This document shows positions 10,474 to 40,876 of a DNA stretch of 64,000 nt, one piece after another. Position 1 is the first letter of the stretch; the number at the start of each line of letters is the position of its first letter. Source of the DNA: Mizuhopecten yessoensis (lineage: Eukaryota); NCBI RefSeq assembly GCF_002113885.1, contig NW_018480040.1, positions 186,001 through 250,000 of the forward strand, given 5' to 3'. A model generated the notes under the pieces. That model was not told the origin of the DNA, searched no databases, and worked only from the letters and a program-made list of their open reading frames with translations. The position numbers were made by a program, and so were the translations under genes.

Positions 10474-12557
10474 TCAAAGTTTTGAAACACTCTCTATGGG
10501 CGATTTCTCCTTACTGTAAAGAAAAGAAGCTTGAAAGATTCTGTTGTTTTTCAGGTAAATTGCAAAATAGATTCTTTGCACATGAACAGTGTCTTGCCAA
10601 CTGTACACGTCAAGATTTACATTGGCCGGTGATTCACCAAGAAACGTGACTTCGGTCTCCAGAACCGGAAACCAGCACATGTCGTCTTCATAGTAACGAT
10701 AGTGTCCGTTTAAGGACGCTTCTGAGGCGCAGTCGGTACAGAATCGGTAAAATTCTGCAAAGTGAACATGAAAGTTGCTATCCATGTCACTAGGTCGAGT
10801 GCGGATCAATGTTTTGAAGGCATTGCTTGGTGGGACGATGTCCTCTTGTTTTGTTAACATTGAAGAACTGTCACGTTTACAAAAATTCAAAAACCGTTCT
10901 GTAACCCATACGGGCAGTTTCGAGGGACGCCGGGTTTCCGGATTTACATTTACAATTTTCGCTTCGAGATGCAAAAGTTGTTCCATTGAAGACGGATCTA
11001 ACAGGTCTTGAGCAATAGTGTACGATGTTTCCCCTATCGACGCAAACGAGATGCGATGCAGCAGAACGCCGTCTCGCTCTGAAGCCTTTCGGTGGAGTCT
11101 TGGAGAACAAACGATATTCTCTTGAACAGTAAATCCTCTCATATTTTCCTGTCTGAATCTCCCAGTGAAAAATCCCTTCGATTCTGACTCAACATAATAA
11201 TCGGATAAAACACGGATAATTCCCACAAGTGACAGATGTTCTGGAAAAAAACACACAATTCAATGTTATTTGTTGTTCAGCTGTTGTACTTTAATGTAGC
11301 ATTTCTTTTATTTGTGTCCTTGACAGATTACTTTTAAAGATAAAACGTGAGTGCGGTAATCGCGAAAAAACTCTGTTGCTTCTAAAATGCGACAAAACAT
11401 TTGCCGTTTATTGCTTATTACTGAAGAGCTAATGAATAATATTATACAAAAACAACCTATAACAATTGTGGATAAATTGTATCTACATTTGTAATTAAAT
11501 AATATGTACATGTGCATATCACAAACATATAGATACTTATATAGATAGGATCTTACATGAGTTTCCATTTCATATGAGATTTATGAAACGAGTATAAGAA
11601 TTTTTCAAATTAGCGAGCCTCTGGCGAGCTAAAATGAAAATTTCGTGACGAGTTTCATAAATTTCATATGAAATGAAAACGAGTTTAAGATCATGGTTAT
11701 CACATAATCAAGATTTGTGGCATTTATTCGTGTAAAACAACAATCTTGAAATGTAAAAAGACGGCATTTTGACTCCAGTGGGGAAGTCTATGACGTCATG
11801 TACTTGTCCTAGACGTGACGTCAAATTAAAACAATTGAAACTTTCAACCAATCACAGGGCTGATAGGTCATACTACACGGGTTAATACTCAAAACAGTAT
11901 GACATGGGTATATTCACTGGATAACACAGTACATCATGTGATAAAATGGAACATTACTCCTTACGTATAGAGATTAGTATATTGACTTGGAGCGCGTGAT
12001 TTTTGTTGAAGGACTGGGTGTTTCTAAAAATAGAATTATGACGCGACTCCAAACAAACGCATCGTCCCGCTTTCGCAGAGTTTTGCTGTGATTTATTTCA
12101 GATTGCTAACATTACTTGTTTAGAAAATAATAAAACAATTGTAGCCTTTAACTTCGGTTAATACCTGAATGCAGTTTCTCGGGTTGATAAATCCAGGTAT
12201 CGATCTCAGCCAAAGGCTATACTTGAATATTAATATAAAAGTTATGAATAATATTTTTGTCAATTTTATAATGAAAGAAAATTTTACAATAACAGAAAGG
12301 GATAAATGTGTCCATGATTTATCTTGTTAGAGTTAGTTAAATATCAAAGGTATGTATGTATATTTATTAGTGATATCGTTGCATGGTTATCAGTGATACA
12401 CATAAATGGTCCCAATACTTCACAGAAAAAAGAGATCCGCGAAGGGAAGCTACTGCGTCCAGCTTACGATATCATTACCTGTTCGGTCATGATAGGATGT
12501 AGGTACGCGTGGCACCAACAGGTCAACCTGGTGGTCGGAAACAAACTTTGACTGCAT
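10474..12557 (-). CDS. Double-hotdog acyl-ACP/acyl-CoA thioesterase-like protein, paralog A (281 aa, C-terminal SKL); coding exons 12557-12479 and 11240-10474
   Basis: Exon 1 MQSKFVSDHQVDLLVPRVPTSYHDRT joins by a phase-1 GT-AG intron to (E)HLSLVGIIR. Carries RPSDMDSNFHVHF and FLGES motifs and ends VSKL*. Probable non-coding 5' exon has its donor at 14687. Confidence 0.85.
11545..11945. mobile_element. ~400-bp hairpin-headed repeat element; copies at 7098-7180 (truncated) and 37598-38011
   Basis: Shared start ataggatcttacat, a ~150-bp hairpin with a GCGAGC-CTCTG-GCGAGC core, then TATCACAT...ATGTGATA inverted repeats. Confidence 0.75.
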
Positions 12558-12865
12558 GTTGTTCAATCTGAAATAAATCGAAAATGATTGATTCATTATG
12601 CCAAAGAAGACCGTTCATCCAGATTATAACCGCTGTATGATAGTCTTATAATAATAATAATAATTCGAGGTTCTTATATACCGCTTTATCACAACCTAGT
12701 TCGTAGGTCGTCTCAAAGCAGTTCACAAATTATTACCCGTGGTAATACATTTTGTAACCATTTAGACTGGAAAATTCAAAGGAAGTCACTAAGAGATATC
12801 TGTGATATTTGACATGTAATGAAAAATCATGTGATGATCATATTTGATTTCATAACCAGTTGAGT

Positions 12866-13427
12866 AGATTATGGTGTTATTACACTGTATAGTAGCCTGG
12901 ACATACAAAGGTGTAATTACACTGTATAACAGCCTGAGTACAATATATGATGGTGTAATTACACTGTATAGTAGCCTGGACATACAAAGGTGCAATTACA
13001 CTGTATAACAGCCTAAGTACAATATATGATGGTGTTATTACACTGTATAACAGCCTGTGTACAATATATGATGGTGTTATTACACTGTATAACAGCCTGA
13101 GTGCAATATATGATGGTGTTATTACACTTTATAACAGTCTAAGTATATTATGGTGCTATTACACTGTATAACAGCCGGAGTGTATGGTGGTATCACACTG
13201 TATAGCAGCCTGAGTATATTATGGTATTATTACACTGTATAACAGCCTGAGTTTTTGAGTGTGATATTACACTGTATAACAGCCTGAGTATACGATGGTG
13301 GTATCACACTGTAGAGCAGTCCGAGTACATGATTGTGTTATTACACAGTATTGTAGGCCGAGTATATGGCGGAGTTATTCACTGAATGGCAGCCCGAGTA
13401 TATAATGGTGTTATTATTACACTGTAT
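12866..13427. repeat. Minisatellite, ~38-42-bp unit, about 14 copies
   Basis: Unit gatggtgttattacactgtataacagcctgagt(acaa)tatat. Confidence 0.9.
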
Positions 13428-14766
13428 ACATGTATATATCTCTGCCTACAACGTAAGAGTCACATTCCCTTAACGACAATTAATTGATAAACTATTTTAA
13501 TAATAATAGCAAATCAAAGTTTGCAACATGTCAGTTTACATGACCCTTGAGTGGAAATAGCGGAAAATCATAACAGTAAGCTGCTACATAGTTACCGGAC
13601 GTACATTGTGTTATGTATAATAGGGTTCGAAAAAGAAATATTTATCCGGATACGATAATTACAGTTTTTAGCTTAGACAATGTTGTGTTACATGCCATTA
13701 CCATATGTACAAAAATCATAAAAAAATCAGTCACACAAAAGTATACAACATATTTACTGGAAACATATAAATCAGCACGAAATTGTACATTTTAAAGGTT
13801 TTATAATGTCGTCACAAAATTCCTCATGATAATATAGTTTGATACCCCTTATGAACAATTCATGTCGAGAAATTTACAAGAGACAATGTTTTGGCGTTTT
13901 TATTCAGTAACGGAGAAATCCGTAACTGTACTGTCGTGCAGTACGTTTTAGCGGCAGCGATATAAGATGTCTGTCCAGCCGATGAGAGAAGGTAACTCCT
14001 CGCTTTATTCACCTAGCCTGTCTGAAATACACTGCAAATACATGTATTTATTTTGAATCAAAACTCATCTTCCAACATCATCTTAATCTCAAACATTGAT
14101 ATAAATGATCAAGTGAGCTATTGATACATGTATCGTACATTCTGCGGTTTGCAATTCTCTCTGCGGCACCCTCTCATGATCAGTGCGTGCATGTTCTAAT
14201 CAAACCTGTTCGTTTTTATTCAAATCCAATATCTGATTAGAAGTATATATCATGATACTTATATTTTTTTTTACTTGCGATTTATTATGTAAATTCAGGA
14301 ATGCGTTGTGTGTAAACTCACACTCGTAACGGGCACTGTGCTGTCGGTCAACAGCGTAGTGCTGTACCAATCTCCAAGCAGAGTTAAGCTACTTTCCCAC
14401 ATATTCTTGGTCACTCCCTTTAAGCGTGATTGAAAAGGAACGACAACTCTAGGTAGAGATTGGTACTGTACATGTTTACTTCTCATTGAAAGGCCCGGAT
14501 ATTCCGCTATTTCTGTCTTATCTATTTTTATCACAGGCTTTCCCAAAAGATGAAACTGGCCACACTGGACGTTGGCGTCAGGCAAAACCATTAGCAACTA
14601 CGAAAGCGTTCGTTGGCGTAATTTAATGTTATAAATGTACTGGCTCTAGCCATGTCCTTATCATACCATACCACACACTTTGCTTACCTGTAAAGTTCCT
14701 GGTAAGATACACTCAGAACGATAAATGGTCGAGTCAAATCACGTGTCTCTTGCTGTCGTGGATAAC

Positions 14767-14786
14767 AGGTGAAAGGTCAGGGGTCA
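14767..14786 (+). promoter_or_regulatory. Three tandem nuclear-receptor half-sites forming overlapping DR1 elements, upstream of the putative 5' exon of paralog A
   Basis: AGGTGA-A-AGGTCA-G-GGGTCA, about 80 bp upstream (minus strand) of a strong donor CAG|GTAAGC at 14687. Confidence 0.45.
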
Positions 14787-15121
14787 AAATTTAGATCGAG
14801 CTATAACTCTGAACCGTACAATATGATAACACACGCTGGCGTGTAATTGATAATGTGACACTACATAAGTATATTTATGACGAGGAATATTATTTTATTT
14901 AGATAGCATGCATCAACTCACTGAAAAAGAATTTGTGCAATATCGCAGAATATTGATTATAATAGAGATATACATATATGTCGTCTGCTCATTAAGGATT
15001 TTTAAAAAAGAGACCAAAATCCTTCTTTTTGTATTTAACCCATTCTAGATCTATAGCTGTACTTTCTGATCTAAATCTCCCGATGCTCGTTGTAAAATTA
15101 CCAATACTGTATTATGACGTC

Positions 15122-15212
15122 TTAACCCTTTCACCACTGTAGACCATAATGGACTCATCCATATCCATGCATGGTAGAGTCTATTAAAACTACATAGGGG
15201 TGAAAGGGTTAA
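15122..15212. mobile_element. 83-bp piggyBac-type MITE with TTAA target duplication
   Basis: TTAA-CCCTTTCACC ... GGTGAAAGGG-TTAA. Confidence 0.8.
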
Positions 15213-15555
15213 AGTTGTTCAATGAATCAACAATGTACGTGTTCATCATGCATGGCATACACTCCATTTTGTCGTGAACAAGCAATTAATCAGTGAATAG
15301 TATTCATCCTTTTTAAAGCTATGCTAACAATGTAATTGAACTCAACTCGTTCTCATTCAATCAAATTTGAAAACATTTCTCTAATAAAATTTATTTCCAA
15401 AACTCACCAAAATCTCCTTGTCTTTACATACTGATTTTTTCACATGAAACGAGATTGGAGATTGTCACGGTACGACTCGGTGGGGAGGAAATGTATGATG
15501 ATGAGGCGATGCGGCGTTATTTGTATTATTTGTGATTGTCTGACTATGATATTAC

Positions 15556-15637
15556 TTGTTTATTTAAATGTTGATAGGAGATGTCTTCATAAGTTGCAAT
15601 TTATGAAGACATCTCCTATCAACATTTAAATAAACAA
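15556..15637. repeat. Near-perfect 82-bp palindrome
   Basis: Perfect 37-bp arms around GTTGCAAT. Confidence 0.9.
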
Positions 15638-15715
15638 TTGTGCCAAATCCATTTTACCCGATTGGACAATAAACATGTTTAAAGTCAAAAGTGCGGCGTT
15701 TGAAGTTATTTAAAC

Positions 15716-15866
15716 AATAACTGGTTGTCTGGATGTAATTATTGTTGATATACTTACAAGTGGCCTCTGGCAAATCCCATAAAACCCGCTAGGGTTTTAT
15801 GGCAGATTTGCCAGAGGTCACTTGTAATTATATCAACAATATTTACATCCAGACAACCAGGTATTT
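15716..15866. repeat. ~150-bp palindrome
   Basis: ctggttgtctggatgtaa...ttacatccagacaaccag arms. Confidence 0.8.
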
Positions 15867-17117
15867 TTTATATTTACATATTTTTCTTTTTTAAGACATA
15901 TTCCTACAAAAACCATTTGCCCTGCCTCAAAATACATTTCAGGCGGCCATTTTGTTTGTTTACATATTCCTACACCTGAAACAGGCAGTTGTAATTATAG
16001 TCGAGCAGTTGTAATTATAGCCTATATAATTACACTTGCCCTCTAACACTGTTGTAATGGGACGGCGCGGGGCAAATGTAAATATATTGTAATATCATCG
16101 AGTTCAATAGGATGAATTGAACAAAGATTACGTTACGTACAAATGTATACATTTCATGCATGTACAATCTATTTCAAAAACTCAGTGAAATAGTTGGTTA
16201 TTATAATTATTCTTGAGAACATTTGATTGTTTTAAAATTCACACTTTCCGATGTGATTTTCACAAATCATTTTACTTTTTCAAAACTAAACTAATGTGTC
16301 CAACATAGTAATCATTTGTGTGATCTTGAGTAAATCACATCACGAAAGTATGATCTATATATGAACATTGGTGTAGACTTTTCCTACCAACTGATAGGTA
16401 ACACTTCAAAAGTACTTGTGTTGTCAAGAGTCAAAGACCCTGGACGCGTATTCATGGAACTGTTATCATGCTCAAACAGTCTGGCACGGGTGTTGTGCTT
16501 AAAGTAACACTTTTTCGTAACTCGCCTGTATCATGTAACACGAACAAAAGTAAAGTAAAGTGTTTACATTGAAAACGGCATTCGGCTTCGCATATTAGTC
16601 TCTTAAAAATTCTTCCAAATTATGGAAAATTGTGATTTTTTAAAAATCAATTTATTACCAAAATAGAAATATGGGCTTGAGCACAGAATATGAGTATGAG
16701 CATGAGAACGGTTTTATGAATACGGCCCAAGGAGACACATTTTTGACACACAATATCAGAATACAGAGTGAAAGTGTACTGTCCGCATTAACAATACACT
16801 TGATTAAGAGTGCAAATATTTTACATTGTGAAAGGAACGTATTTCTCCGAATAAGACATGTAGCTTTGAAAACATTTTGTTCAGTTTTTGTTTATTTTGA
16901 AGGCACAAAAAAACATAAGTTACATACTATTTGTTTTTAATTAGTGTTAGCTTTAAGTAGTCTATATGTATGGATCCATCAGTTTCCACAGAAAGACTTG
17001 TATCACCTCTCTTCCGCCATTGACCAAGAAGATTCGCCCACACCTGGCGAGTCCACTCAACTTTGACATCGACAAAGCTACTGCACATACCAGAGTCCAT
17101 GTTCCTTTCATGCTGAA

Positions 17118-18663
17118 TCATAATTTTGAGACGAAAACTTTGTCGTTTTTTTCATCACCGTACAAATAGTCTGCTTGGAATATTCTGTGAGATTTCAGAT
17201 AAATTGCAAAATAGATTCTCTGTATGTTCTTGCCAAGTATACACATCCAGATTTGAACACGGTCCAGCTTCTCCTATAAATGTGGCATCGGCCTCGAGCA
17301 CGGGAAACTTGCACATGTCGTCGTCATAGTGACGATAGTACCCGGATTGCGACGCTTCTGAAGCACACTCTGCGCAGAATCCGTAATATTCTACAAAATG
17401 GACGTGCAGGTTTACATCTGTGTCACTATATCTTGTGCGACTCATTGTTTTGAAGGCGTTCTTTGGTGGAATGATTTCGTTTTGTATTTCTGTTATCAAT
17501 ACACGATCGTCACTTGAAAATCTGGAACTTTCTTCAATAAACACTGTTGGAAGTTTCCACGGTCTCCTTGTTTCATAATCAATGTTCACCATCTTTGTTT
17601 CAATACGGAACAGTCGTTCCTTTGTAGAGGAATCCAGGATATCATGGAAAACTGTATACGAGGTTGTTCCAACTCTAGGAATCGACACATGTAACAAAAA
17701 ATCATGGTTCTTGACAAAACTTCTTTTATGCAATTTCGGTGAACCAACTGCTTTTTCTCGTACACAAAATGCCTGTTGAAGATGTTTTGTAGGGAATCCA
17801 AGCCGCATCATCTCCGCACTGCCTTCCGCAAGAAATTTTATGGTTCGATCAAAGGAAAGATGTCCTGAAAAAAACATAAATTTATAAAATGTTCATAACA
17901 TATTCCACTACATCGGTGAATGAATGCCTGATGTTATTGGTTAATAGTTATGTGTTATTATTTAAGAAATTATCAACATACGTACGTGTGTTATGGTGGA
18001 CTAAATAACGAGGGTGAGCAAATTTAGGGAAAATGACATGTCATCTGGATAATGTGCGCACAATTTATTTTTCTAGTTCTTAACAATTTGTTATTATCTA
18101 GTTTTCATTATATGATCATGTGACACATAGATGCGACTGATAATTTAACCAGAACAGATGAATTTAAATACATATAAATGATGTTTTGGTGGCATTGCTC
18201 ATATGATTTTAACGAGCTTAATGGTCTCTCTGGGAACAAAATGCTGAAATATATCTCCCTAATTTCCGAGTGGCTAAGATAAAGACAATAATGAATGGCA
18301 GGCTATTCTATCGTTACTGTTTGGAATAACTTAGCTTTTATCGTTACTGTTCGGAATGATTTAGCCTGTATCGTTACTATTCGGAATAACTTAGCCTTTA
18401 TCGTTACTGTTCGGAATAACTTAGCCTGTATCTTTACTGTGCCTTTATCGGTAGTGACTGGTGTGTTCTATAGTTTTCCTTCCATGTAAAGTATTGTTTG
18501 CTGTCCATGAATCAGAACATGTTATGGTTTGTTTACAGGAGAACAGTTATGTTTCACTATAAGGGCAATACATATATAATTTACACCTACCAAACCTTCC
18601 ATAGAGCGCCTGAGGTGGGCGTGGTAATGACACAAGTGGGCGTAATTCGGACTTCGTCTCCAT
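17118..18663 (-). CDS. Thioesterase paralog B with an 8-bp deletion frameshift near the 3' end (current stop 17155, ancestral SKL stop 17118); exons 18663-18591 and 17864-17155; possibly a young pseudogene
   Basis: METKSELRPLVSLPRPPQALYGRF|GHLSFDRT. Carries RYSDTDVNLHV and FIGEA. After WQ the frame shifts; the ancestral frame still reads NIQRIYFAIYLKSHRIFQADYLYGDEKNDKVFVSKL*. Confidence 0.8.
18305..18440. repeat. 30-bp tandem repeat, ~4.5 copies, in the paralog B intron
   Basis: Unit ttagcctttatcgttactgttcggaataac. Confidence 0.9.
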
Positions 18664-20234
18664 TCTGAAACAGTTTTGCTTGGCATCATAAAATGTTCCA
18701 CATCAAGTTGAATTAAAAAAATCCTTTTGTCCCCTAAAATATGAAAATTTCGTTGAGCATATTGCTTATACTCTGTATCTATGCCTCAGCCTTGTAATAT
18801 CCATTAGCTGATTGAGTGTGGTGACGCACCAAAACACACAAAAAAAGTGCTCAAAACATTATATCAAGTCGAAAAAAGCTGTTTTTTTGGCCCAAAAAGT
18901 ATAGTTCCAAATGAATGCCTCTGCTCGCTAGTCAGCAGCATATAGGGTGTGGTGATATACGTATACCATCACACAATCCACTTGCTCAAAATCTTAAACC
19001 TGAAGCTTGCCCAAAACCTTTACAATTTGACCCAAATCCATATTTAATATAGTAGAGATGACGCCTTATAAATGCCTTAAACGTGATTGCCACGTGACTG
19101 CACGTGGCGCAGGTTTTATTCGAGTGTCAAGAGTAGTAATGGGAAAATAAAGTGATATAGTGGCGGTATTTTTTTTTACAATTAAGCAATTGGACCGCCG
19201 AAGGCCAAGCCCAAACAATGGTGATGAGTCTATATGACAAGCGTTTTGTGTTCGTTTGAACGAAGAGAATACAAATATTAACGAAGTCTTGTTTCATGGA
19301 AAGGTGATCTTACGTGTGTAATATCGAGTTATCTATACATTACAATGGTACGCTTACGTCACCTGTCCTCTTCACAGGTGCTCGACACACTTATAAAATG
19401 TGTATGTATACATCATATTAATGTGTATAGCACATGTGTTCCTCTTATTTAACAACCACACACGTACACGTATAAAAAAAATAGCCACATAAGAACTTTT
19501 TAGTCAAAAAACGCATGCATACCTGTAGCTTGTTGAATATTTGTCTTCCCCCTTTTCTATGGTGGCTGTAGCGGTGCTGTTAGTTCTGTGGTTTCAATGA
19601 TATCGGGTTTTTTCTAACGTTTTTTGATCGACAAAGGTTGAAGGATTGGTTTCGTGATTGTGCATACATGTATGACGAATGACGTAATTTTAGTTTAGAC
19701 TGTTCGAATCGGGATTAATATTATCGGTAGCGTATCACTAGATAAATATAAACTTTATTTATTTAACAACAATTATGAAACGAGTATATCAACTTATATT
19801 TATCTATCTTGTTGGCATGTTTGTTTAATAAGCGCTACGCCACCCGGCCACTCTTCACTAGATAAAGGGGAAAACAGACTCCAGTACATATAACGTAAAT
19901 AACAATGCTATGACTGTGATGATTATTGCAATACACATTGATACACACCGCTGCAATGCAATTCGTCAGCTCACTATAAGTGATGAAAGAATGAAAGATT
20001 TACATAAATATATGTCATGGTCCCATCAATGTGAATATATTAGCTGATTGTTTAAGAAAAATAAGAATGAAGAAAAAACACAAAAAGAAAAACCAAGCCC
20101 ATATTTTAATATTAAATATTGAATACTTGTCTGTTTATAAATCATCATATACTCTAACTGTTGCCTTTAATCATTTCTTAAAAAAAAAAAAAACGAAAAA
20201 AAATAAATAGATCTTAGACGATTTCTCCGATGGA

Positions 20235-21682
20235 TTATTCAAGGCCATATCGATAGCGTGCTTGAAATATTCTGGCAGACTTCAGATAAATTGCAAAATA
20301 AATGTCCTGTACGTTCTTTGTATCTTGCCAGGTATACACATCCAAATTTGAACATGGCGCAGATTCTCCGATAAATGTAGCATCAGTCTCTAGAACCGGA
20401 AATTGGCTTATGTCGTCGTCATAGTGACGATAGTACCCGGATTGCGACGCTTCTGAAGCACAGTCTGCGCAGAATCCGTAATACGCTCCAAAGTTTATAT
20501 GAAAATTCACATCTGTATCGCTATATCTTGTGCGAATTGTTGTTTTGAAGGCGTTCTGCGGAGGAATGATATCGCCTTGTACTTCTGTTATTAAAACAGA
20601 ATCGTTACATTTAAAACTGGAGCATCTATCTAAAAACTCTGCAGGGAGTTTCGATGGCTTTCTTGTTTCAGGATCAATGTTCACCATTTTAGATTCAGTT
20701 CGTGTTAAACGCTCCATTGTAGTGGATTCAAATAGATCATGGGAAACGGAATATGACGTAGTTCCAACCGAAGCGATCGACACATGATACAAAAAATCAT
20801 GGTTCTGGGGAAAATCCTTCTCGTGAAGTTTAGGAGAACATACGGCTTTCTCTCGTACAAGGAATGTCATTTTGATGAGATTTGTGGGAAATTCACACTG
20901 TTTAATCTTATCATAGCCTGCCCAGATATATTTCATGGTCCCATCAATGGGTAGATGACCTGAAATCAGACGCGCATTTAATCCACCTTAGTTTATATAT
21001 AATAATAACATTAATTTCAATAGCAAAATGTTACATGAACTTGTTATCGTGACCGAATATAAAATGAAATATATATTTTTTTTCGTTGAAATAAAAGAAT
21101 ACATATTCTAGGTAATAAGCATTGAACCAGATAAGAAGTCTTTAAAAAGATTGTTAACTGTCTGGGAAATTATATGAACTGCGCTATGCGGAACTCACTA
21201 ATTGTTAATGAGATTGTTAATCAAACAGACACAATGGATCATTTTCATCCGATCAATTGTATTTACCATCTTCATTTTCCCTTATCTGTATAATTATAAC
21301 ATTGTGTTTTGATTGGATTATCTTTTTAACAAACATTTAAAGGTAGCGTCATGTTTCCTCCTCCCAAAGGAATGTCTCCGATCATATTTCAAACATTCCA
21401 GGTCTCTCTAGAAAAAAGGATTGCAAATCAATCAACCATGATTTCCAAACCACTGACAGAGAAACACTCATTAATTTATCTAGCAGGATAAAGAACCTTA
21501 ACCGCTATATGATTTTTCAATTTAATAAAAAAAAAATAATAATTAAACATCGCCCCTGTAATAGAAAAAATATGAATATTTCACTAAATAAGTAATAATA
21601 TATACTTACCAAACCTGTCGTAGAGGGCACGAGGTGGGCGTGGTAACGAAAAAAGTGGGCGTACTTCAGATTTAGTCTCCAT
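20235..21682 (-). CDS. Thioesterase paralog C (265 aa, SKL tail lost by a nonsense codon); exons 21682-21610 and 20959-20235
   Basis: METKSEVRPLFSLPRPPRALYDRF|GHLPIDGTMKY. Carries RYSDTDVNFHINF and FIGES. Ends YGLE* where paralogs have E-K-S. Confidence 0.85.
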
Positions 21683-24200: not shown

Positions 24201-24360
24201 AATCAATTACATGTAACTGAGCAAGATCGGGCTATCTCAGTCTCGGGCTAAGATTATGGAACATCTTAACCTCGGCTTACGCCTCGGTTGGGATTTTGTT
24301 ACAGAATCTTAACCCTCGACTGAGATAAGCCGATCTCGCTCAGTTACAGGTAATAGATTT
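24201..24360. repeat. ~160-bp imperfect palindrome
   Basis: tgtaactgagc...gctcagttaca arms with a CCTCGG-CTTACG-CCTCGG core. Confidence 0.75.
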
Positions 24361-26859: not shown

Positions 26860-29142
26860 TCAGAGTTTTGAGACAATAGCTTCGTCAGATTTTTCACAAC
26901 CATACAGATAGTCTGCTTGGAATATTCTGTCAGATTTTAGATAAATTGCAAAATAAATTCTCTGTTGGTTCTGTGTATCTTGCCAAGAGTACACGTCTAG
27001 ATTTGAGCACGGCGGTGACTCTCCAATAAACGAAACATCGGTTTTAAGAACCGGTAATCGACAAATGTCGTCGTCATAGTGACGATAGTACCCGGATTGC
27101 GACGCTTCTGAAGCACAGTCTGCGCAGAATTTGTAGTATTGTGCATAATTGACGTGTAAATTGATATCCAAATCACTATATCTAGTGCGAATTATTGATT
27201 TAAATGCGTTCTTTGGTGGAACAAATTCCTCTTGTACATCTGTTATCATTGCAGGATCAGAACTTGCAAACTTAGTGCATTCTTCAACAAACGCTGTTGG
27301 AAGTTTCGACGGTCTCCTTGTTTCTGGATCAATGTTCACCATTTTTGTTTCGATGCGAAATATTCGCCCCATTGTGGAGGAATCTATTAGATCGTGGAAA
27401 ATGGAATATGATGTTGTTCCAACATTAGGAACTGAAGCGTGTAAAAAGATATCGTTGTTCTCAGGGAAACCTTTTTCGTGAAGTTGAGGAGAACATACAG
27501 CCTTCTCCCGTACAGTGAATGCTTTTTGTATAAGCTTTGTTGGAAATCCCTGCTTTATCATCTCTGGATAGCCTTCCCAAAGAAACTTTATTGTTCCATC
27601 GAAAGGAAGATGGCCTGAAAACAGACACAAATCTATTTATTCTTTTCAAAAAAAGAAAGATTATTACAAATCATTTGTAATCTTGTGATTAAGTTATGGC
27701 ATCTAGAAAAAGTTAAATTGAAAATTCGAAATTATTTAACATCTGCAATAAATAATTTTGTTTGATTTAGATCTAAGATGTACAACGTAAAACAGAATTA
27801 TATTGAACACGTGAGTTGAAAATGTGGCTTAATATTTCCCCTCCTGCCTGAGTAACTTTGGCCAAGTTAAGCCTTCCCTGCAGTTTCAAGAAAAGTATAT
27901 ACGTGCCGTATCTCACTGCATGCCGTAAAAGGGGACTAATGTGGGGGCCTCTGCACAATCTTTAGTTTTATCTAATGTCTTGTGTATGGATACCTTGAAG
28001 AAACCAAATTAGATCTTGCAACATTTTGGATCTTTATATTTCTCTCTACTTCTTATCAGCCTTTTTGTTTCCTAGTGCCTTCTTCAGCAGTACCTCACGT
28101 TTGGCCCTGGTGTTGAATGTCGACCAAGTGGGATTGTAAAAGCATCATATCCTTGAAATGGCTGCTGTTAACATTCAGCATTTAGGATAATGGCAACGAC
28201 TGGTCTAACCGTTGTCAGTAGAATGTAACCGGATGGAATGGTATTTCAGTGAGGGGCTATTGCAAGGAGTGATTTACTCCACCATACCCTGCCACTCCAG
28301 TACACACATGCACGCATCCATAACATACATTGAGACATGTCCTTAGATAACCCTAGCTGTTCATATGACGTCACACAAATTAGAACCAATCATTAGCCTG
28401 TTTCTGTGTGCGACTTAAAATGGTGTATTTGAAATACTTATCACAATTAGAGATACGTGTATAGATACATAAAATCGACAAAATAATCAAATGAAATAAT
28501 ACATTTTCATGAATGTCTAAGTTTCTGAAGTAGGCCATTAAAATGGCGAATAGTCCTACCGTTGTCTTATTTCTATTTTGTTTATAATACATATATTTTG
28601 TAATAGAGAAACATCATCATTTTTGCCAGAGATTCACAAATACCTTGCCTTCGTTTAACACTAGTGATCTACGGGAAACAAAATATAATATTTCCCTAAT
28701 TCAAAGACTTATAAATGTATTTCAGCAATTAATGTTTTAGCAAATGTTGTTATGGTTCTATAACACACATTGCTATTGATTACAAACTTAATAAAGCCAG
28801 GCAGGGCTTAATGTAAGTGTGTCAGCAATCGAAATGTGTGTTATAGGACCATAAATATATATAGTTATGCTTTATTTAGATATTTTGAACAGTTCTTTTA
28901 ACAGCAAATTAAGTCTTGACAACAATGAAATTGATGACGTGACAATAGAGATCGAGCATGTTACAATAGCAAATGCTGTTAAAGTATCGTAATAACATTT
29001 GCCTTATCAATGCATTGCAAGGGAAGGATGCAGAGCAAATGATTATATAAATATATAATACAAACTTACCAAACCTGTCTAGTATCACCCAAGTTGGGCG
29101 TGGCAATGACACGAGTTGCAATAAGTTGGTCTTCGTCCCCAT
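26860..29142 (-). CDS. Thioesterase paralog D (275 aa, C-terminal SKL); exons 29142-29070 and 27614-26860
   Basis: MGTKTNLLQLVSLPRPTWVILDRF|GHLPFDGTIKF. Carries RYSDLDINLHVNY and FIGES and ends IVSKL*. Confidence 0.88.
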
Positions 29143-30694: not shown

Positions 30695-33600
30695 TCATCG
30701 TTTCAAGATGTTACTTAGATCAGATTTTTCGTAGCCGTACAGAAAGTTCGCTTGAAATATCATCGCAGATTTCAGATAGATTGCACAATAAATTTTCTGT
30801 ACATTGATTTCATCTTATCAAGTATACACGTCCAGATTTGAACATGTGGCAGATTCTCCTTTAAATATGACATCGGTCTCTAGAACCGGAAACTGGCAAC
30901 TGTCGTCGTCAGAGTAACGATAGTACCCAGATTGCGACGCTTCTGAAGTACTGTTTGCGCAGAATTCGTAGTATTTAGATAAAATTGACGTGCATTTAAG
31001 GATTCATATCATTAAATCTTGTACTACGAATAAATTCTTTGAAGGCGTCCTTAGTTGGAACCATTTCCTTTCGTGTTTCTGTTATTAAACCACGACTGTG
31101 ACTTGGAAACTTGAAACATTTCTCAACAAACACTGTTGGGAGTTGCGATGGCCTCCTTGATTCAGGATCAATATTAATGTGCTTTGTTTCAATAAGAGAG
31201 TGTTGCTCCATTGTAGAGGGGACCTATAGCACATTGAAAATAGAATATGTCTTCTTTACAGCCGTGTTGACCGATGCATTGAATAAAACGTCGTGATTCA
31301 TCAGGAAATTTATTTGGTGAAGTTTAGGAGAAAATTTACCTTTCTCTCGTACCATGTATGTTTTTTTAAGAAGAGTCGTGGGAAGCTCCTGCCGTTTGTT
31401 TTTAAGACAGCCTTCCCAAAGAGGTTGTATTGTTCCATCGATGGGAAGATGGCCTAAAGCAAACATTAATGTATAATATTGTTATGACATTCGTAAATAC
31501 TGATATCAGTTACAAAATGTCATATTGATTTAATTGATTAATTATCTTTTCACAAAATTCTTTTATAAACTCTTCTTGAAATATAATTATAACAGATAGG
31601 TATTCGAAACTGAACAAACGTTATTGTTCTTCATGACTTGTTTACTATATTTCTAACTATATAGTAACAACGCTTTATGCTACATTCTATATTTTTCATC
31701 TATAATGTCACATGGAGACAACAGTTAATTTATCGTAAGAAGAAATATGATTGATTGTATTATTATATGTTACAGCGTGTATGATTGGGTTATATGGAAC
31801 ATGTATTATTTTTGCAATTTAGATTTTTCAATTCATATATTTTCTTCTAATAAGATCGCTGCCAAAACTGCCTAAAGTAGGGATGTTTTACTCCTTACTC
31901 ACACCAACTCACACCGGAGCACACACCTTGCTCACACCAACACCAACGCTGCTCACACCGACTCACACCGGAGCACACACCTTGCTCACACTAACACCAA
32001 CGCTGCTCACACCGACTCACACCGGAGCACGCACCTAAGCTTGCTCACACCAACACCAACGCTGCTCACACCGACCCAAACCGGAGCATACACCTTAAGC
32101 TTACTCACACCTTACTCACACCGGCACACACCAGAGCGCACAACACCGCTCCTCACACTGCTCACACCAACGCTCACTCCACAATGCCTAACCAGACTAT
32201 TTCAGAACAACAACTATTGTAACACAATTTAAAACATGGGCCAAAATGCAAATAAAATATACAGTTTCTTTAAATTACCTTCCGATATTTATCTAACTTT
32301 GACAAACTAGCGATATATGTACATATGACAGGTTTTAATGTATCATGTGGTTTTTTATTTATTATTTAATTGTGCGGGTCTTTTATGTGTCAGTTTTAAT
32401 AGTTTGCCATGTATACCCACGTAAACAAGACCAGCATGATATCTTGTCGACACAGGACAGCAAGAGAATGAATGCGAACTTTAAAGAGTGTATTTGATGG
32501 TAAAAGGTACAGCTGTCAATAGGAGTGAACAAATACAAGTAAAGTCGTTTGGGTCATGCGATTCTCTTTGACCTTGCGTCAAATTTCTGTAATACTTCAG
32601 ACCTTTATATCGAGATAACGTCAGCTACCCAATCTTTATGTACTGTTACAAAATGCACTCGGTCACCAGATTCCATTATTTACTATGTAATACCGACGTA
32701 CTTCAACTCTCAAACGAATTTAAAACATCATTATTCCATTTCTGTAGAAATTGATCATATACATTAAACCATGTTCGTTCAAAATATTTTGTATAAAACA
32801 ATAATATATAAGTTGCTAAAAGGTGGAGAATCGTCATACTTCAACAGACAACTGAAGGATAAAGATCTCCAGAACTAGTTCATACGAAAGTGTAATGTTA
32901 CCATGAAGCTCTACGATACCAACTTTATCGTCCAGATTGGACTCTGTGTATGACAGAAACCGCATACACATCACCCTACTGAAAATGAAGGGGGCGGTTT
33001 CACTTCTAGCAATGATGTGTATGTCACTGGCTATTACCGAGAGCTTGTCGACATAAATTGATTCAACAAATACTTCGGACTTTATTAGGATAGCGTCAGT
33101 GACACTACCAGATAACGTCAACACCACACTGTGTGGTTATCTGAAACAATACCCTTTGCAGTACGATATGTCGTTTCCGTGTGTCATTATCAAGGGCGAG
33201 TACGCATTGACTTTAGACAATTCATCAAAACAAAGTAACCATTAGAGGTGTTGCATTTAGTTATCTTAAACAATATCCTGCATAAACTCCTCTATCTATA
33301 TACTTTTATTAAAAACAACACCGACTCAAATACTTCATTTGCCGACTAGCCTGTCGCGTACAGTAGCCGGAGTTTATTAGTGCATTGTTGGGCAATGTAA
33401 TCAAACAAATGTTTGACAGTAATATATATACAACTCCTTCACTTCTCTCCAAACACACGCCATTGACTATGAAGAATGAATTAAATGATCCAGTCCTGGG
33501 CTTAAAACCAGATCTAAAAAACTATATTTTTCGATATAAAAAACTCTGGAAAACCTTGGGCTGATCTAGGATGGACAAAATATCGAAAAACTAATGTTTA

Positions 33601-34731
33601 TCAATAACCACTGTAGCATGATGTACAACATGAATGTAACTTATTCTTATGTTAATACTGGAACGAGCATAAAGCGAATACAAGTGCATTGCAAGTTGTT
33701 TTTAATTGTGATGTTGTCGGTACGGCTGGCAGCTAGATACTGATACGTGTCCCTATTACACTGCCCGATCCCACCTTATCACGTGACCTATATATATATG
33801 TCACGTACAGAGCGAGTAGCACGAGCCGTTTATACAACATTTTCCCGGCTTATACTACCGAAACGCGGGAAAATTTAATTACAGTATGATATGTCGTTTC
33901 CGTGTGTCGTTATCAAGGGCGAGCACGCATTGACTTTAGACAATTATCAAAACAAAGTAACCATTAGAGGTGTTGCATTTAACGTTCAACAGTGGAAATA
34001 TCTACAACACCTAACTGCTCATATCAACATGTCTATTAGAAATGCTGGTATGTAAATGTATTAGTATTAAATATGTATTAGTATTAAATAAAATATAAAT
34101 AATATGTTACGTGTTTTGTTGTTTCGTATAGGTACTTATGACATAAACCTATGGGAGGGATGAGCTGCTGCATACTGTCATATATTCAACGTAACATTCT
34201 CATACATGTGCGGCACTACCGCTAGTGATTCTTTTTTTGAAATTCTCATCAGATAAAGATGTATAAATATCTGTCGGTGTACTTATACAAAATACATTGC
34301 GGTTTTTGAGTGATTCGAATATCTGTGTTTTTGTGATGTCTATGCAAAACTTTTTTTTATATGTATATGCAATCATTATATTTTGCCAATGATTTTAACT
34401 ATGTACAATAAAGTAATAATGAGTTTTACTGTGAATAATAACGATACGACCCTGCTAGATCTGATGCTATAATTTGGATCATGTATGTTATCTTGTCATA
34501 ACAAACGTTTATATCGTATACTTGTCTTTTTTATTAACGTTATTGTTACACGATCTGGCGCTATAATTTTGAACATGTATTTATCTTGTCATTATAAATG
34601 TTAATAGTGTATAGTTGTAGAACTACTACATGGGAAAACGTGCATTTTATTCAATCACCAAACCTGGCATAGAGCGCCCGAGATGGACGTGGTGACGTCA
34701 CAAGTGGGCGTAACTCGGACTTTGTTCCAAA
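30695..34731 (-). pseudogene. Thioesterase paralog E pseudogene; exons 34731-34659 and 31453-30695
   Basis: Start ATG lost (cag|TTTGGAACA versus cag|tATGGAGAC in paralog C). Stops at 31224, 30996 and about 30816-30821 (WQ codons changed to TGA TAA). Tail SKL has drifted to LKR*. Aligns along its length with paralogs B-D. Confidence 0.85.
31890..32180. repeat. CA-rich (ctcacacc) minisatellite, ~54-bp higher-order unit
   Basis: Unit ttgctcacaccaacaccaacgctgctcacaccgactcacaccggagcacacacc. Confidence 0.85.
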
Positions 34732-35336
34732 CTGAAACAGTAATATAACGACACTAATACAGACACACTTCGGTAAACTGCCATGACTTTTCCATTGTGG
34801 AGATTTCTCTGTCACACCCTCAGGGTAGGGGAAGATTCTATTAATCTCCTTCATCTAATTTGTTCTTTAGAATGATGTTATACTATTCATTAGACCAATG
34901 AGTAAATATGATAATGTTCATTAGTTCATCAATTCTTGTTATATATTGGTTTGTCGTTATCTTGAGGCTAATTTAGCCTTTAGTTATACATCTTATCAAA
35001 GGATTGATCCTCTCAAACTTTTCCCGTTTTAAGATACATAATTTTGTATATACATTTCTATAGGAAGCCGTTTTACTATTAATCAAATATCTGATATCAA
35101 AAATCGATTTTCGGATATAAAAGATAGCATCTAATTAAAGGGTAAGGTACACGCGCACGTGTAAAGTGAATTAGAGGGTGTGCGTGTAAATTGCATGTTT
35201 ATTATGAGTGTACATTACTTTGACAGGAACATTATTTTGTTAATGAGTGTGGTAAGAATTATTATTGTGAGATAGAAATAGGGTACAAAAGGGCTTACTG
35301 AAGATATATTAAGTTGTAAGATATATTAGTGGTTAT

Positions 35337-35640
35337 GTACATTCGGTTGTTAAATACATTACGTGGTTAGGTATATTACGTGATAACGTACATGACGTGG
35401 TAAAGTACATTACGTGATAAAGTACATCACGTGGTTACGTACATTACGTGGTAGGGTACATTACGTGATAAAGTACATAACGTGGTAAAGTACATTACGT
35501 GGTAAAGTACATCACGTGGTTAGGTACATTACGTGATAAGGCACATAACGTGGTAAAGTACATTACGTCGTAAAATACATTACGAGGTAAAGTACATTAC
35601 ATGATAAAGTACATTACGTGGTAAGGTAAATAAAGTGGTA
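35337..35640. repeat. 17-bp minisatellite, about 17 copies
   Basis: Unit tacattacgtggtaaag. Confidence 0.9.
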
Positions 35641-38159
35641 ATGTAGGTAAATAATGTCATAAATAACTTCAGATTTAATTTCATATTTAGAGGAAAGGTA
35701 CATAAAGTGGTAAGGAACATTTAGTTGTACTGTACCTAAAGATGTTAAGATACATTTCCAGAAACAGGGTGAGGTCACGAGGTTCTGGTCAGTCGACTTT
35801 TATTTGGAGATACGTCTCTTTCGGAACAGGAAAATCGTTGATTTCTTCATTCTATTTTTACATTGATTTTTATTTTTGTATTACTTAGATTGAATAAATC
35901 ACCTGCAGTGAGTTACCGCAATATTTTTATTTATTAAGTAAAAGCGACGAAACCATGTTTTGTTTCTTTCTGAATTAAATACCCCTTATGGAACCCCATC
36001 TTTATAAGGGGGAATAACTCTTAATACAAAATGGAAATCAGACGATAAACACAGTCACGTGTGTTCCGACAATGATCTAGTCGAAAGGTAAGATACGACG
36101 TATCTCTATTATATGTTAAACTAGATGGAAACAAATATAAACTACATAAGTACATGTGTATTGTATAAATGTATAGCTTGTTCGTCGTATAATATATAAA
36201 ATAACAGCTGATCTTTCGTGTGTTTTAGACTTAAATAGGTCCTACTTCCATTTCCTATCTATAGTCAAGGTCTAACCCTTGTGACCAGTCACGTCACTCA
36301 AAGATACATCTATACTGGTGATACTGGTTTACAGTGAGTACATGGGGAAGATAATACACATTCCAGATAACATCCTACTTTCATTTAACCGGATGTTATT
36401 GAGTCCGGCGTGACAATATAAGGGGCGCCAAAGGGTATAAATCGAATGACGTGCGGTTTCAATTCATGAAGTTAGAACATACTAATAACAATTATTGTGT
36501 TCATAAATCTAGCTTAATGTTTTTACATTTAGTTTAACGTTCTTGCTTAAGGGAAACATACTACATGTACGTTTAACTATAGTGTAGCATTTTTCCAATG
36601 ATGTTCTCTAGAGAGGTTTATATATATATAGTTCTACTTGGTGTAATATTTAATGATACACATATTGTTAAAATTCACTTTTTATACATTTAATTAACAA
36701 ATTCATTTACATTTCTTTTAATATACCTCGCAAACAACAAACCAATAGTTATTTGTTTACCACTAATTTCCATCCCCTTTAGTCAGTCTTTCTTCCTTTG
36801 TAATCACGCATTACACATGCAAGAGGAGATGAAATGCAACAGCCAGACCGGGATTCGAACCCGGGACCCTCCGAACTCTATGCGGGCACTTTATCGACCC
36901 AGTCCAGTTGCTGTTCCACTACATACATATTACGGCGTAGCATCAACAGAACGAAAAGTTTGACAATTACACAAAAATAGCCCCATGCATTTAATTTGTT
37001 ACCACATCTAAATAGCTAAGAAAGTAGAAGAAAAAAACACAAACATAGTTTTTGTATGACCATTTCCTGAATACCATTTTCCTTTTGAAAAAAAACAAAT
37101 CTTGAACATTTGGAGTAGAATCTTTCCGGGGTGCGTCTTAACGTTTAATGAAACAAACATCTGCTTTTTTAATCATATTATTAGTGATAAGTGCTCGCCA
37201 TTTGTTTTGTCGGAGAGGGAAAACATTGAATTTGAGTTTGAACGTAAGGAAACACTTTCATCTCCCAGTCAAAGTTCAACTATGTCATTTACTGGTTTAA
37301 AGGTAACATCATTGCATTCAATACTCCATCGCAACACACAAGTTTGGTCAATCATTTCTATGTTCCTTCCACATTTTTCCAAGACATTCTAGGAAATATC
37401 TTTTTGAGACACTAATGTCTCTGCAACAAATGCTTAAAACGTGTTTCTAGTCCCAGAAATAAAAAAAAAAAAATTAACAGACATATTTCGTTATCTTGGT
37501 GTGAAAGCGTTTGGAGACATTACGTAAAACTGAATAAGTAACGAGTAAATTAGAATTGATGATTTCAAACATGTCTATCCTTCATGAATAATATATATAT
37601 AGGATCTTACATTCGTTTTAATTTCATTAAAATTTATGAAACAGGTCTAAGAATTGATCAATTTAGCAAGCCTCTGGCGAGCTAGAATGAAAAATTCGTG
37701 ACGAGTTTCATAAATTTCCCCTATGAAATGAAAACGAGTGTAAGATCCTTTTTATCACATAATCAAGATTTGTGGCGTTTATTCGTGAAAAACGACAATT
37801 TTCATGCAACCTTGAAATGTAAAAAGCCGCCATTTTGACTCAAGTGCGTACATTTGTGACGTCATGTACTTGTTCTAGGCGTGACCTAACAATTGAAGCA
37901 AATAAAACGTACAACCAATCACAGGGCTGTTAGGTCATATTACATGGGTTAATACGCAAAAAAAAATTTGACATAGATATATTCACTGGATAACAGAGTA
38001 CATTATGTGATACAGTTGTACATGTAAAAAAATTTAGTAGAAGCTGATGCAGGGTTAATAATACAAAATCCCTCTCCTACTGTACTGTGTTTTTAATTCT
38101 CTCCTACACAAGCTCCCCTTAACTTCCAGTTGGATAGAAATCAAGCATTGCTGGGCCAG

Positions 38160-38385
38160 AACACTTCCGTTGACCAGATCGCTCAATATGTTAGAGCGCT
38201 ACTGCAACATTATGAAAGACTCGGGGTTCGAATCATGGTCTAACCCTGCTGAAAGTTTTCACCCTGAACACTATTGTTGATTATATATTTTGTTTGAGTC
38301 CTGCAAAGTATGGTTTTCTTTTCTTAAATGGTTTATCAAAGCTATAGTCATGTCGGGGAAATCGATTTCCAGTACTTCGTTACAG
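38160..38385 (+). mobile_element. tRNA-headed SINE-like repeat; second copy at 50264-50505
   Basis: Both start acacttccgttg, have a GTTCGAATC B box and share gcaaagtatggttttctttt...aagctatagtcatg. Confidence 0.65.
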
Positions 38386-38476
38386 TTGTACATGTAACAA
38401 TGATTTCGTGTCACACTTAAAGTGTTGCGATATTACTGTACACATACATTCTATCTGAAACAGGAAAGATAATAGT

Positions 38477-38548
38477 GGGCTTCCACCTGGGATCGAACCC
38501 TCGATCTCCAGGTTCCTAGTCGGACGCCCTACCACTGAGCTAAAGGGA
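38477..38548 (-). mobile_element. tRNA-like SINE head
   Basis: A box TAGCTCAGTGGTAG and B box GGTTCGATCC, but no clean anticodon arm or acceptor stem. Confidence 0.55.
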
Positions 38549-38676
38549 AATTCCCTCTAGCTCGAATCTAGAAGGCGATCTTAATCCTTTGTACAAGTAA
38601 AACCTGCCACATATCTATTCGTTTTCAAAAGTATGGGTTTTTTTTTAAAGTAAATGCATTATTGTTTTTACAGAAG

Positions 38677-40876
38677 ATGGCTTTCTATGAAATTGTCCAC
38701 GACTCTCTGGCACGAGTAGATATCCATGTAAACGGATTACCGAGCCAGTTCTTCGACAGGACAAGTGAGTAATTATTGATATAAACGGGGCGGATAAGCG
38801 CACGACAGGGCGAAGGATAGTTGAATCGCACAATTGTAGGCATCATGTGCGGACGATGTGGACATGGTGTGTTAACGTTATTTTAGTGCATTGTGCGGTC
38901 ACAAAACTGTAATTGTAATGCAATGTTGTGATACATGTACTATAGAAATGAAAATATTGATTCATATGGATAACCTGTATATTTTTAATGAAGATTGGGC
39001 TAACATAAATATTCAACTTACTTCTTGGCCTTGTGCATTACTTGAAATCCTATTTAAGGCTGCATATACAAAACTGTTTAAAAGTGAGAATCAATTTGTA
39101 TTACTTTGTAGGTCAGATTTTGAAAAAGTTTAGCTTGTTTAAAGGAAAGTATCATGCATAAATCTTTGAACATCCTCAAAGAACCTATGTTCAACTGAAA
39201 ATACATTATGTACACCCAGTGTGCATTGTCGTAGTAGGGGTATATCGGCATTGTCATGAACAGGCATTGGGAAAACTCTCCAGCGGCGGATTCAGGATTT
39301 CTAAAGGGAGAGGGGCGTCTACAAAATACCGTATTCTTTTCTGGTTTTAATAATGTGGTTGCGGAATTTGCCTCATTTCCTGATCCTCGAAATTCCCTAA
39401 GTTACCCTCACTTACGTTCTCTGCAGCCCTTGGAAATATAATGGCGAAATCGACGGCTTTGTATGTGCCACCTTGTTGATAGTTTGAACCTGTGAGGTAC
39501 ATCAAAAGAAATCTGCGGCTGCGTAACAAGAAGATTAACCGGCTATGAGGACGGGTGTCGCCCCGCTGTATTCTTTATTGTGATTTAAATTGTAATAAGA
39601 TTTACTTGCTTTGTCAAAAATGCGAATGTTCAGTGTAAGTAATTATATAAGCAGTATATGGTTAAAACGGAGTAACATTAGAAAAAAATATTAACAACAA
39701 TGCACAATTGCATCAAAAATGCTATTGTTATTATTTTCTGTTTGATATAAATTTCCGTCACAGTTACTTGTGTGTGGCATGAAGTATGCTTGTAATGTAG
39801 CCTCTAGTAATTATCAGTACACGGAGGACAAGTGCCTAATTAGGGGGGCCACTGTCCTTCGAAAGGCAGTGATCACCTCAGCGTTTAGGCACTTGTTTTA
39901 ACCTTGAACAAAATGAAATAGCTTACCGCCTGTCTTCGATTTTGTCATGGGGTAATACAAAGGGCAGGGGAGGTTAGTGAGCGTAACCTCTAAAGCTTGA
40001 GTATGTACTTCCTGGATCTGTCACTGCTCTGATGAATTTTCTTTGTGTCATTTTTATCGTCTTTAATGCATAATCACTTAAATTATTGTTGCAGATAATT
40101 TATCGGTTTGGAGTATCGTCGAGCTTTTTTTGAATGCTGGAAGCCCTCCTAATGTTAAAGAGTTTACCAGAAGACAGGATCTGTATAGGACGCGCCAGAT
40201 AATGCAATTTGTTGTACAAATATCCTGTTCTGTAACACCGGAAATCCATTTGATTTCAAAATACAATAAATCAACCAACAGATTAGTCATGTCAACTGAT
40301 ATTCATGAATTTGGCACGAGTTCTTTCAGTTTGAAAAGCTCAATGTCTAATCGCGAGACAAAAGAGAAACTTGGTGATTTCTTTATTAAACTCGTCACAG
40401 TGAACATGAAAACCAGGAAATCATGTCCTTTGCCTAAATGGTATGTGGAAAAATTCAGAGATGTACCGGGTTTCAATACCAATCCTCCGTATCCAAAGCC
40501 AAAGATACCGGAAATGCCCGAAGTTATATATCACGTGACCGTTACGGCACGATTCAGTGATATGGATGGGAATAACCACGTGACCACACATCGTTATATG
40601 CAGTTTTTCACTGACTGCGCAACAGAAGCAGCCAATTGTGGATTTTACAAACATTTCACTAACGACATGTGCTGGTATCCTGTTGAAACGTTTGATGTCA
40701 CTTTACTAGGCGAAAGTAAAGTTGGTGACAAGTTACGTGTATGTACGTGGCAAGACGGTGCTGATATTCAAAGAGTATATTTCAACTGCTTCAATGACGG
40801 TAAATGTGTGATGAAAGCATCGTTTGTCTATGGGCTGAACACAATTACTCCAAAAATTCCCCCACACTATTTATAA
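38677..40876 (+). CDS. Divergent thioesterase paralog F (289 aa, no canonical PTS1); exons 38677-38764 and 40095-40876
   Basis: MAFYEIVHDSLARVDIHVNGLPSQFFDRT|(N)NLSVWSIVELF, with the same phase-1 intron position as A-E. Carries RFSDMDGNNHV, MCWYPV, LLGES and TWQD motifs. Confidence 0.85.

Follow-up and report, generated by a model that had tools for sequence, protein, structure and literature searches.

The TE14 thioesterases, represented here by plant FatA/FatB and bacterial acyl-ACP thioesterases (PDB 5X04, 9HRR, 9MQF, 2OWN, 2ESS and 4GAK; PF01643 and PF20791), have been described as a plant and bacterial family working in type II FAS (PMC3176148), and the roles of the catalytic residues have been described for FatA/FatB (PMC12713704; PMC5830452). 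Enzymes of the YbgC/FadM/4HBT type (PF13279, TIGR00051) are single hotdogs of about 130 aa, whereas ACOT7/11/12, ACOT8 (TesB type) and LnmK are double hotdogs. ACOT8 is a peroxisomal enzyme. In the present study, we analyzed a 64,000-nucleotide window of the Mizuhopecten yessoensis genome (contig NW_018480040.1, positions 186,001 to 250,000), in which six paralogous loci, designated A to F, lie within positions 10474-40876, A-E on the minus strand and F on the plus strand. The window contains two single N bases (43958 and 48738), both outside the array. Judging from sequence and structural model, we estimate a probability of about two in three that the products of A and D are thioesterases of the peroxisomal matrix which have TE14 (FatA/FatB) architecture and act on acyl-CoA.

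Fold and catalytic residues

The AlphaFold model of gene A, whose product is identical to database protein P0006, had a pLDDT of 92 and showed two tandem hotdogs with a long linker between them. Each of its five best VIA matches was to an acyl-ACP thioesterase, with Z scores of 22.1-24.2 across 231-251 residues, ranks 1-44 in Foldseek were occupied by acyl-ACP thioesterases, and a sequence-profile search led to the same enzymes with E values of 1.5e-14 to 7e-12, at an identity to TE14 of just 10-16%. The structure ranking, Foldseek, the profile search and the motif alignment thus all agreed with the FatA/FatB-like double-hotdog assignment that a sequence-only reading of this DNA had proposed. 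The distinction from ACOT8/TesB, which the same reading had drawn, and that from ACOT7-type enzymes were borne out by weaker structural scores (ACOT7, Z 18.4; ACOT12, 16.7; TesB-like, 12-13) and by the lack of a sequence match in PDB profile searches, although the overall reaction is likely the same.

A non-hydrolytic hotdog, either an LnmK-like acyltransferase/decarboxylase or an MFE-2/MaoC-type hydratase, was considered in view of the scores of LnmK (Z 20.6) and of hydratase 2 (Z 16-17), itself a peroxisomal double hotdog. The low TE14 identity and the structural closeness of the non-hydrolytic LnmK were both counted against the acyl-CoA thioesterase reading. However, when the best structural match was checked for a non-thioesterase hotdog such as MaoC, TE14 came out ahead: five TE14 structures, at Z 22-24, all outscored LnmK and the hydratases (Z 15-17 overall). 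Moreover, no Pfam match to MaoC and no sequence match to the MaoC or LnmK families was obtained, and the TE14 motifs D-x-N-x-H and Y-x-x-E form the most conserved columns of the family. A non-hydrolytic function therefore appears highly improbable.

Domain profiles placed the family less sharply. No protein across the genome matched PF01643 above the curated cut-off (F reached 17.2 vs 23.7), and only D passed that of PF20791 (23.3; cut-off 21). PF13279 was the top Pfam match in 137 of 146 members, while TIGR00051 gave a score of 21 vs a cut-off of 68.7. Elongin_A matches (E ~0.006) lay below the cut-off and were taken as chance. Each scallop half matches the YbgC/FadM fold, but the scallop proteins are double, and in the alignment the single-domain enzymes lack the downstream Glu and carry a Pro one position past its column.

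In gene A, the catalytic motif D178-x-D180-x-N182-x-H184 is encoded at 10768..10788 and F-L-G-E229-S at 10630..10644, both on the minus strand. By alignment, D180, N182, H184 and E229 match FatA Asp262, Asn264, His266 and Glu300 (PMC12713704 for the first three); E229 falls in the family motif Y-x-x-E-S/C, aligned to FatA Tyr297..Glu300 and to the Glu of YVAES in 2ESS. Among ~142 family representatives, D180 and H184 were conserved in 99% each, E229 in 94% and N182 in 54%. The family has in common with TE14 the tandem hotdogs with a long linker, the D-x-N-x-H loop and downstream Y-x-x-E-S/C of the C domain, and a degenerate, faster-evolving N domain. It differs from TE14 in a His-to-Glu spacing of 45 instead of 34, in the variability of the V-N-N following His, in the introns of these animal genes, and in a C-terminal PTS1 in place of a plastid transit peptide. 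Its predicted location is the peroxisome, whereas TE14 enzymes work where type II FAS resides, in the plastid or the bacterial cytosol.

Organization and state of the six copies

The phase-1 intron reported as common to the six paralogs was found in all six loci, with GT..AG ends and at an identical codon. On the minus strand, gene A consists of coding exon 1 (12479..12557; 26 codons plus 1 base up to the phase-1 donor, conserved in the Ylistrum orthologue) and an intact exon 2 (10474..11240), which encodes most of the N hotdog, the linker, the catalytic C hotdog and the SKL end. Gene D (exon 1, 29070..29142; exon 2, 26860..27614; minus strand) is likewise intact, ends in SKL and corresponds to database protein P0001. 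Gene F on the plus strand (exon 1, 38677..38764; exon 2, 40095..40876) is intact and ends in HYL, which is no canonical PTS1. A, D and F are the only complete copies, rather than the five non-pseudogene copies counted earlier, as gene B proved to be frameshifted and gene C to have lost its tail.

Gene B (minus strand) has coding exon 1 at 18591..18663, preceded by an extra 5' non-coding exon ending at ~19523, and exon 2 at 17118..17864. Because of an 8-nt deletion at 17230, the frame changes immediately past a conserved W-Q and runs into a stop at 17157-17155. The product thereby lacks the two final beta-strands of its catalytic hotdog as well as the SKL tail, which lies out of frame at 17129-17118. 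The deletion was also present in other samples (one RNA-type run and two DNA runs), with contigs from three other samples crossing 17230 without a gap, and is therefore not an assembly slip. RNA was examined for B and C, and reads confirmed splicing of both; B is transcribed and spliced, but its product is probably non-functional. In gene C (minus strand; coding exon 1, 21610..21682; extra 5' non-coding exon ending at ~22234; exon 2, 20235..20959), both domains are complete. A stop at 20237-20235 cuts off the PTS1 tail, and a second stop lies within the old tail; since PTS1 is absent, the product is probably cytosolic. Pseudogene E (minus strand) has lost its start codon, with TTT replacing ATG in exon 1 (34659..34731), and its exon 2 (30695..31453) carries several stops, a frameshift near 30980 and no SKL, the catalytic motif being destroyed.

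The motifs had been recorded with mixed accuracy. The C-terminal R-x-S-D-x-D-x-N-x-H was found in A, B, C, D and F as described. The same five copies carry F/L-I/L-G-E-S/A, which begins 42 residues past His, not about 37, with its Glu at +45. The N-terminal D-R-x-G/E/N-H/N-L, supposed to be in each copy, reads G-R-F-G-H-L in B and A-R-F-G-H-L in E.

Origin and divergence of the family

Searches with exon 2 alone, or with the full-length proteins returned by the database, revealed a family of 825 clusters at E<1e-10, distributed over no fewer than six phyla or subphyla of animals, with members in molluscs, annelids, brachiopods, echinoderms, hemichordates and amphioxus; a word-based homologue search recovered only 7-16 proteins. 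Clusters from Binatota, Myxococcota and Chloroflexota were also encountered in the searches. At least 24 family loci lie on 10 contigs of the Mizuhopecten genome, so the earlier idea of a local expansion does not describe the family. Nor did one local expansion yield all six genes: in the tree, A-E fall together with the C4195 cluster, and F joins an orthologue from Argopecten and a paralogue encoded on a different contig. F, which is 25-31% identical to A-D, is an old, separate paralogue adjoining A-E and did not arise from their duplications. The array is a birth-and-death cluster in which A is an old pectinid orthologue and B-E are younger duplicates. Almost every scallop paralogue examined, and likewise the annelid Owenia, has a predicted phase-1 acceptor at the identical codon, which makes a recent bacterial transfer unlikely. 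A literature search for an animal acyl-ACP thioesterase family found no paper, in line with the suggestion of an uncharacterised animal branch, and the databases label the domain automatically; the family is apparently large, invertebrate and undescribed.

With dN/dS at 0.17-0.37, well below 1 in both domains, A and D are under purifying selection. The N-terminal half does diverge faster, as had been noticed, but the gap is equally present between orthologues, and it therefore provides no evidence for the substrate diversification read into it. This bears on the proposal that the enzymes are specialised for aromatic, branched, dicarboxylic, 3-hydroxy or 3-keto CoA esters instead of housekeeping beta-oxidation, and would give signalling or defence metabolites or detoxify algal compounds, with repeated duplication following such chemistry. 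Such a role would suit the large and volatile copy number with its many broken copies, the tandem arrays that arose independently in other animals, the loss in A-D of an N-domain Arg kept by 71% of the family, and the hydrolysis of 3-ketoacyl thioesters by some TE14 members (PMC3176148). Against the low dN/dS and an N-domain divergence that is alike in orthologues and paralogues, we regard it as unlikely.

Targeting signals and the probable substrate

A strict PTS1 ([SAC][KRH][LM]) stood at the C-terminus of 50 of 150 representatives, compared with an internal rate of 0.32%. The SKL ends seen on A and D were verified, and their orthologues carry SKM and SKL; B (as encoded), C, E and F have none. 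PTS1 was present in the A-E ancestor, as had been proposed for the minus-strand clade, but it is not special to that clade; being family-wide, the signal is much older. Several relatives, e.g. P0008, P0197 and P0133, have mitochondrial-looking N-terminal extensions rather than PTS1, so no single compartment accounts for the family as a whole. A PTS2 was considered for relatives with R-I-A-R-Q-L at the N-terminus but was not accepted, the first Arg not being conserved.

These presequences were counted in favour of true acyl-ACP thioesterases, which would free chains from an ACP domain of FAS/PKS or, in members with presequences, from mitochondrial ACP; chain length would then be set in these animals as in plant plastids. 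Acyl-ACP enzymes make up all of the closest structures and profiles, and a basic stretch, T-R-R-P-S-K-L, corresponds to the R-K-L-S-K-I patch proposed as the ACP binder of FatB (PMC5830452). However, a similar basic stretch aligns in single-domain acyl-CoA-type thioesterases, and no FAS or PKS gene was found within the window or the flanks examined. Furthermore, A and D bear SKL, and to our knowledge animal peroxisomes contain acyl-CoAs but neither type II FAS nor ACP. We consider activity on acyl-ACP unlikely, and family members with a peroxisome address probably trim fatty acyl-CoAs instead.

For A and D as peroxisomal acyl-CoA thioesterases, the following course is suggested. Proteins with SKL are imported by PEX5, and A and D would enter the matrix in this way. 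By analogy with FatA/FatB, the acyl chain would enter a cavity in the N-terminal domain, and the depth of this cavity would fix chain length. The thioester would be attacked by an acidic residue, which is Asp in the FatA model, and water would then free acid and thiol. Because of the SKL signal and the peroxisomal supply of acyl-CoAs, a job like that of vertebrate ACOT3-6/ACOT8 is likely, in which chain-shortened, branched or unusual acids, such as dietary algal or xenobiotic ones, would be released and CoA freed. The array enzymes may terminate beta-oxidation.

As a birth-and-death cluster, the scallop array is nothing out of the ordinary, and it is the wider family that carries interest. There is a small chance that it represents an old bilaterian TE14-scaffold family, whose PTS1 forms are peroxisomal and whose presequence forms are mitochondrial, and which includes genuine acyl-ACP or chain-length-selective thioesterases. 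If so, marine invertebrates would possess a plant-like means of setting fatty acid chain length, and the family, which is cheap to assay, would offer hundreds of diverged thioesterases as a natural library, perhaps selective for short or medium chains; TE14 enzymes are the main tool in fatty acid chain-length engineering. A large animal branch in peroxisomes with the catalytic set of TE14 would add one more structural class to the peroxisomal thioesterases of animals, and would show that a single scaffold has switched from ACP to CoA or in the opposite direction.

Layout and integrity of the array

TBLASTN revealed six family loci in the window. On the minus strand lie gene A (exon 1, 12557-12479; exon 2, 11240-10474), gene B (18663-18591; 17864-17118), gene C (21682-21610; 20959-20235), gene D (29142-29070; 27614-26860) and locus E (34731-34659; 31453-30695), and gene F is on the plus strand (38677-38764; 40095-40876). 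The array of six paralogues proposed in the sequence-only reading is real. A phase-1 GT..AG intron occupies an identical codon in all six loci. Reads, examined for B and C only, backed the splice junctions of both genes and added a 5′ non-coding exon to each. For the searches, exon 2 sequences or proteins as given by databases served as queries. A, B, C and D are each identical to a Mizuhopecten yessoensis database protein named as hypothetical or uncharacterised, and the name of the UniRef entry for D starts with 'Acyl-ACP thioesterase-like'. Minisatellites lie upstream of coding exon 1 of A (12824-13373, units of 37-42 nt) and of E (35278-35668, 17-nt units).

The array proved more decayed than the five non-pseudogene copies originally counted: A, D and F are complete, but B is frameshifted and C has lost its tail to a stop at 20237-20235, with both domains present. 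The 8-nt deletion of B at 17230 precedes the positions of strands 249-256 and 259-268 in the gene A model, so B lacks two strands of the catalytic hotdog; its SKL is out of frame at 17129-17118. Contigs of three runs from other samples, one RNA-type and two DNA, span the site without gaps, and the lesion is therefore real. Only one contig, that of the RNA-type run, has in addition an inserted base at 17377, upstream of the Glu. Locus E has no ATG, several stops, a frameshift near 30980 and a destroyed catalytic motif. In B the N-terminal D-R motif, once ascribed to every copy, reads G-R, and in E it reads A-R. Over the 3′ end of C (19898-20285), DNA run X6 gives scarcely any or no coverage, unlike run X5, which covers the stretch; this possibly reflects a structural polymorphism or a filter effect.

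Elsewhere in the window, a small plus-strand multi-exon gene at 2639-6060 (exons near 2639-2707, 3661-3777, 5362-5466 and 5918-6060) encodes a product whose N-terminus is hydrophobic and which has stretches rich in His; its sole domain match is a faint BRICHOS (E 0.16). In Ylistrum, two homologues of 134-135 aa flank the A orthologue. On the plus strand at 42392-48728 lies the remnant of a LINE retrotransposon, in which an ORF1-like frame precedes fragments of an endonuclease and a reverse transcriptase whose reading frames are disrupted. At 55450-58556 a unit of about 1.06 kb is repeated three times in tandem, the copies being 91-99% identical, and an inverted repeat pair comes next at 58953-59560.

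Fold and active site

The gene A protein was modelled by AlphaFold2 with 146 relatives, yielding two hotdog domains separated by a long linker (pLDDT 92.4). Foldseek ranks 1-44 were all acyl-ACP thioesterases (TM about 0.65-0.73), and a Foldseek-independent structure search was headed by the TE14 structures 4GAK, 2OWN, 5X04, 9MQF and 2ESS (Z 24.2-22.1). Sequence profile matches to 9MQF (1.5e-14), 5X04 (4.7e-14) and FatA (1.5e-12) were collinear over both domains; the proposed FatA/FatB-like double hotdog was thus right. LnmK, ACOT7 and hydratase 2 followed in the structure search with Z 20.6, 18.4 and 17.4; the score of LnmK, a non-hydrolytic double-hotdog enzyme, lies below the TE14 structures, and we consider a non-hydrolytic reaction very improbable.

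Conservation among about 142 representatives (gene A numbering) is 99% for D180 and for H184, 94% for E229, 89% for D178 and 54% for N182. The family Glu, which single-domain YbgC/FadM enzymes lack, lines up with YVAES of 2ESS. In Arabidopsis FatA, the catalytic residues are Asp262, Asn264, His266 and Glu300, and the N half makes the acyl cavity (PMC12713704, PMC5830452); the His-to-Glu spacing is 34 in FatA, whereas it is 45 in these scallop proteins.

Breadth and history of the family

The expansion, earlier taken as local, is broader: the Mizuhopecten genome holds at least 24 family loci on 10 contigs, several of them broken. In a profile search, 825 clusters (50% identity) passed E<1e-10 and 2875 passed E<0.001; plant and bacterial TE14 may be among the weaker ones. 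With the best 150 matches examined individually, the named members belong to bivalves, gastropods, Owenia, Lingula, Acanthaster, Ptychodera and Branchiostoma. In the ESM Atlas the eukaryotic clusters had 85-707 members, mainly from molluscs, and were followed by bacterial acyl-ACP thioesterase-like clusters. Tandem copies recur in other animals. A phase-1 acceptor was predicted at the identical codon in Owenia and in almost every scallop paralogue that was examined, indicating that the gene is old in animals. Within a large, old family of invertebrate FatA/FatB-like (TE14-type) thioesterases, the array is one cluster.

In an ML tree of family copies, whose bootstrap had not fully settled, B-E came together as a Mizuhopecten clade (96/95) whose sister group is two Pecten copies. 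A grouped with Pecten and Ylistrum orthologues (100/99), and F joined a paralogue from another contig and an Argopecten orthologue (100/99). In Ylistrum, too, degraded copies adjoin the A orthologue. Another five paralogues make up a second array (L005-L009, G000:C4195:685000-727000), the sister group of A-E; their tails include ASL and SSL, and at least two of them are broken. The copies are under purifying selection (dN/dS 0.17-0.37 throughout). N- and C-domain identities were 61% and 75% between paralogues C and D, and 55% and 73% (A) and 52% and 65% (F) between orthologues. Since the N domain outpaces the C domain equally between orthologues, this gap is a family baseline and gives no evidence for the substrate diversification that the divergent N halves had earlier suggested.

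Targeting signals and proposed function

A strict C-terminal peroxisomal signal (PTS1) ends 50 of 150 representatives, against an internal rate of 0.32%. Its bearers include amphioxus, starfish, brachiopod and annelid members, and most scallop paralogues in the same tree region end in the SKL-like variants ASL, SSL, SHL, FKL and SRM; in a second clade, only 4 of 50 carry PTS1. Several relatives have Arg/Ser/Leu-rich N-terminal extensions that, judged by eye, look mitochondrial. Several full-length relatives bear such presequences, and D-x-Y-x-H often replaces D-x-N-x-H in them; loci L028, L034 and L031 (G000 contigs C5589 and C5421) and database proteins P0008, P0197 and P0133 lack PTS1.

TE14 has been described as plant and bacterial (PMC3176148). 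Our literature search, mostly outside subscription journals, turned up no paper describing an animal branch, and automatic annotation already flags the acyl-ACP thioesterase domain. The family resembles a TE14 enzyme in its expected working, yet is not filed as a member because it mostly misses the Pfam cut-offs and differs in its compartment, the predicted peroxisome.

The family has the TE14 scaffold, the conserved catalytic residues and, in some members including A and D (both ending in SKL), PTS1. By analogy with FatA/FatB, the acyl group would be bound in the N-domain cavity and the thioester cut by the Asp/His/Glu set. True acyl-ACP hydrolysis would suit the closest structural matches, but animal peroxisomes hold acyl-CoA and, to our knowledge, no ACP, and we regard it as improbable. 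For the same reason acyl-CoA is the expected substrate of A and D, which would, with a probability of roughly two in three, play a role parallel to that of ACOT3-6 and ACOT8; specialised CoA esters are an unlikely substrate, if slightly less so than acyl-ACP. Peroxisomal acyl-CoA hydrolysis is, on this analogy, most likely the function of the complete SKL-bearing copies.
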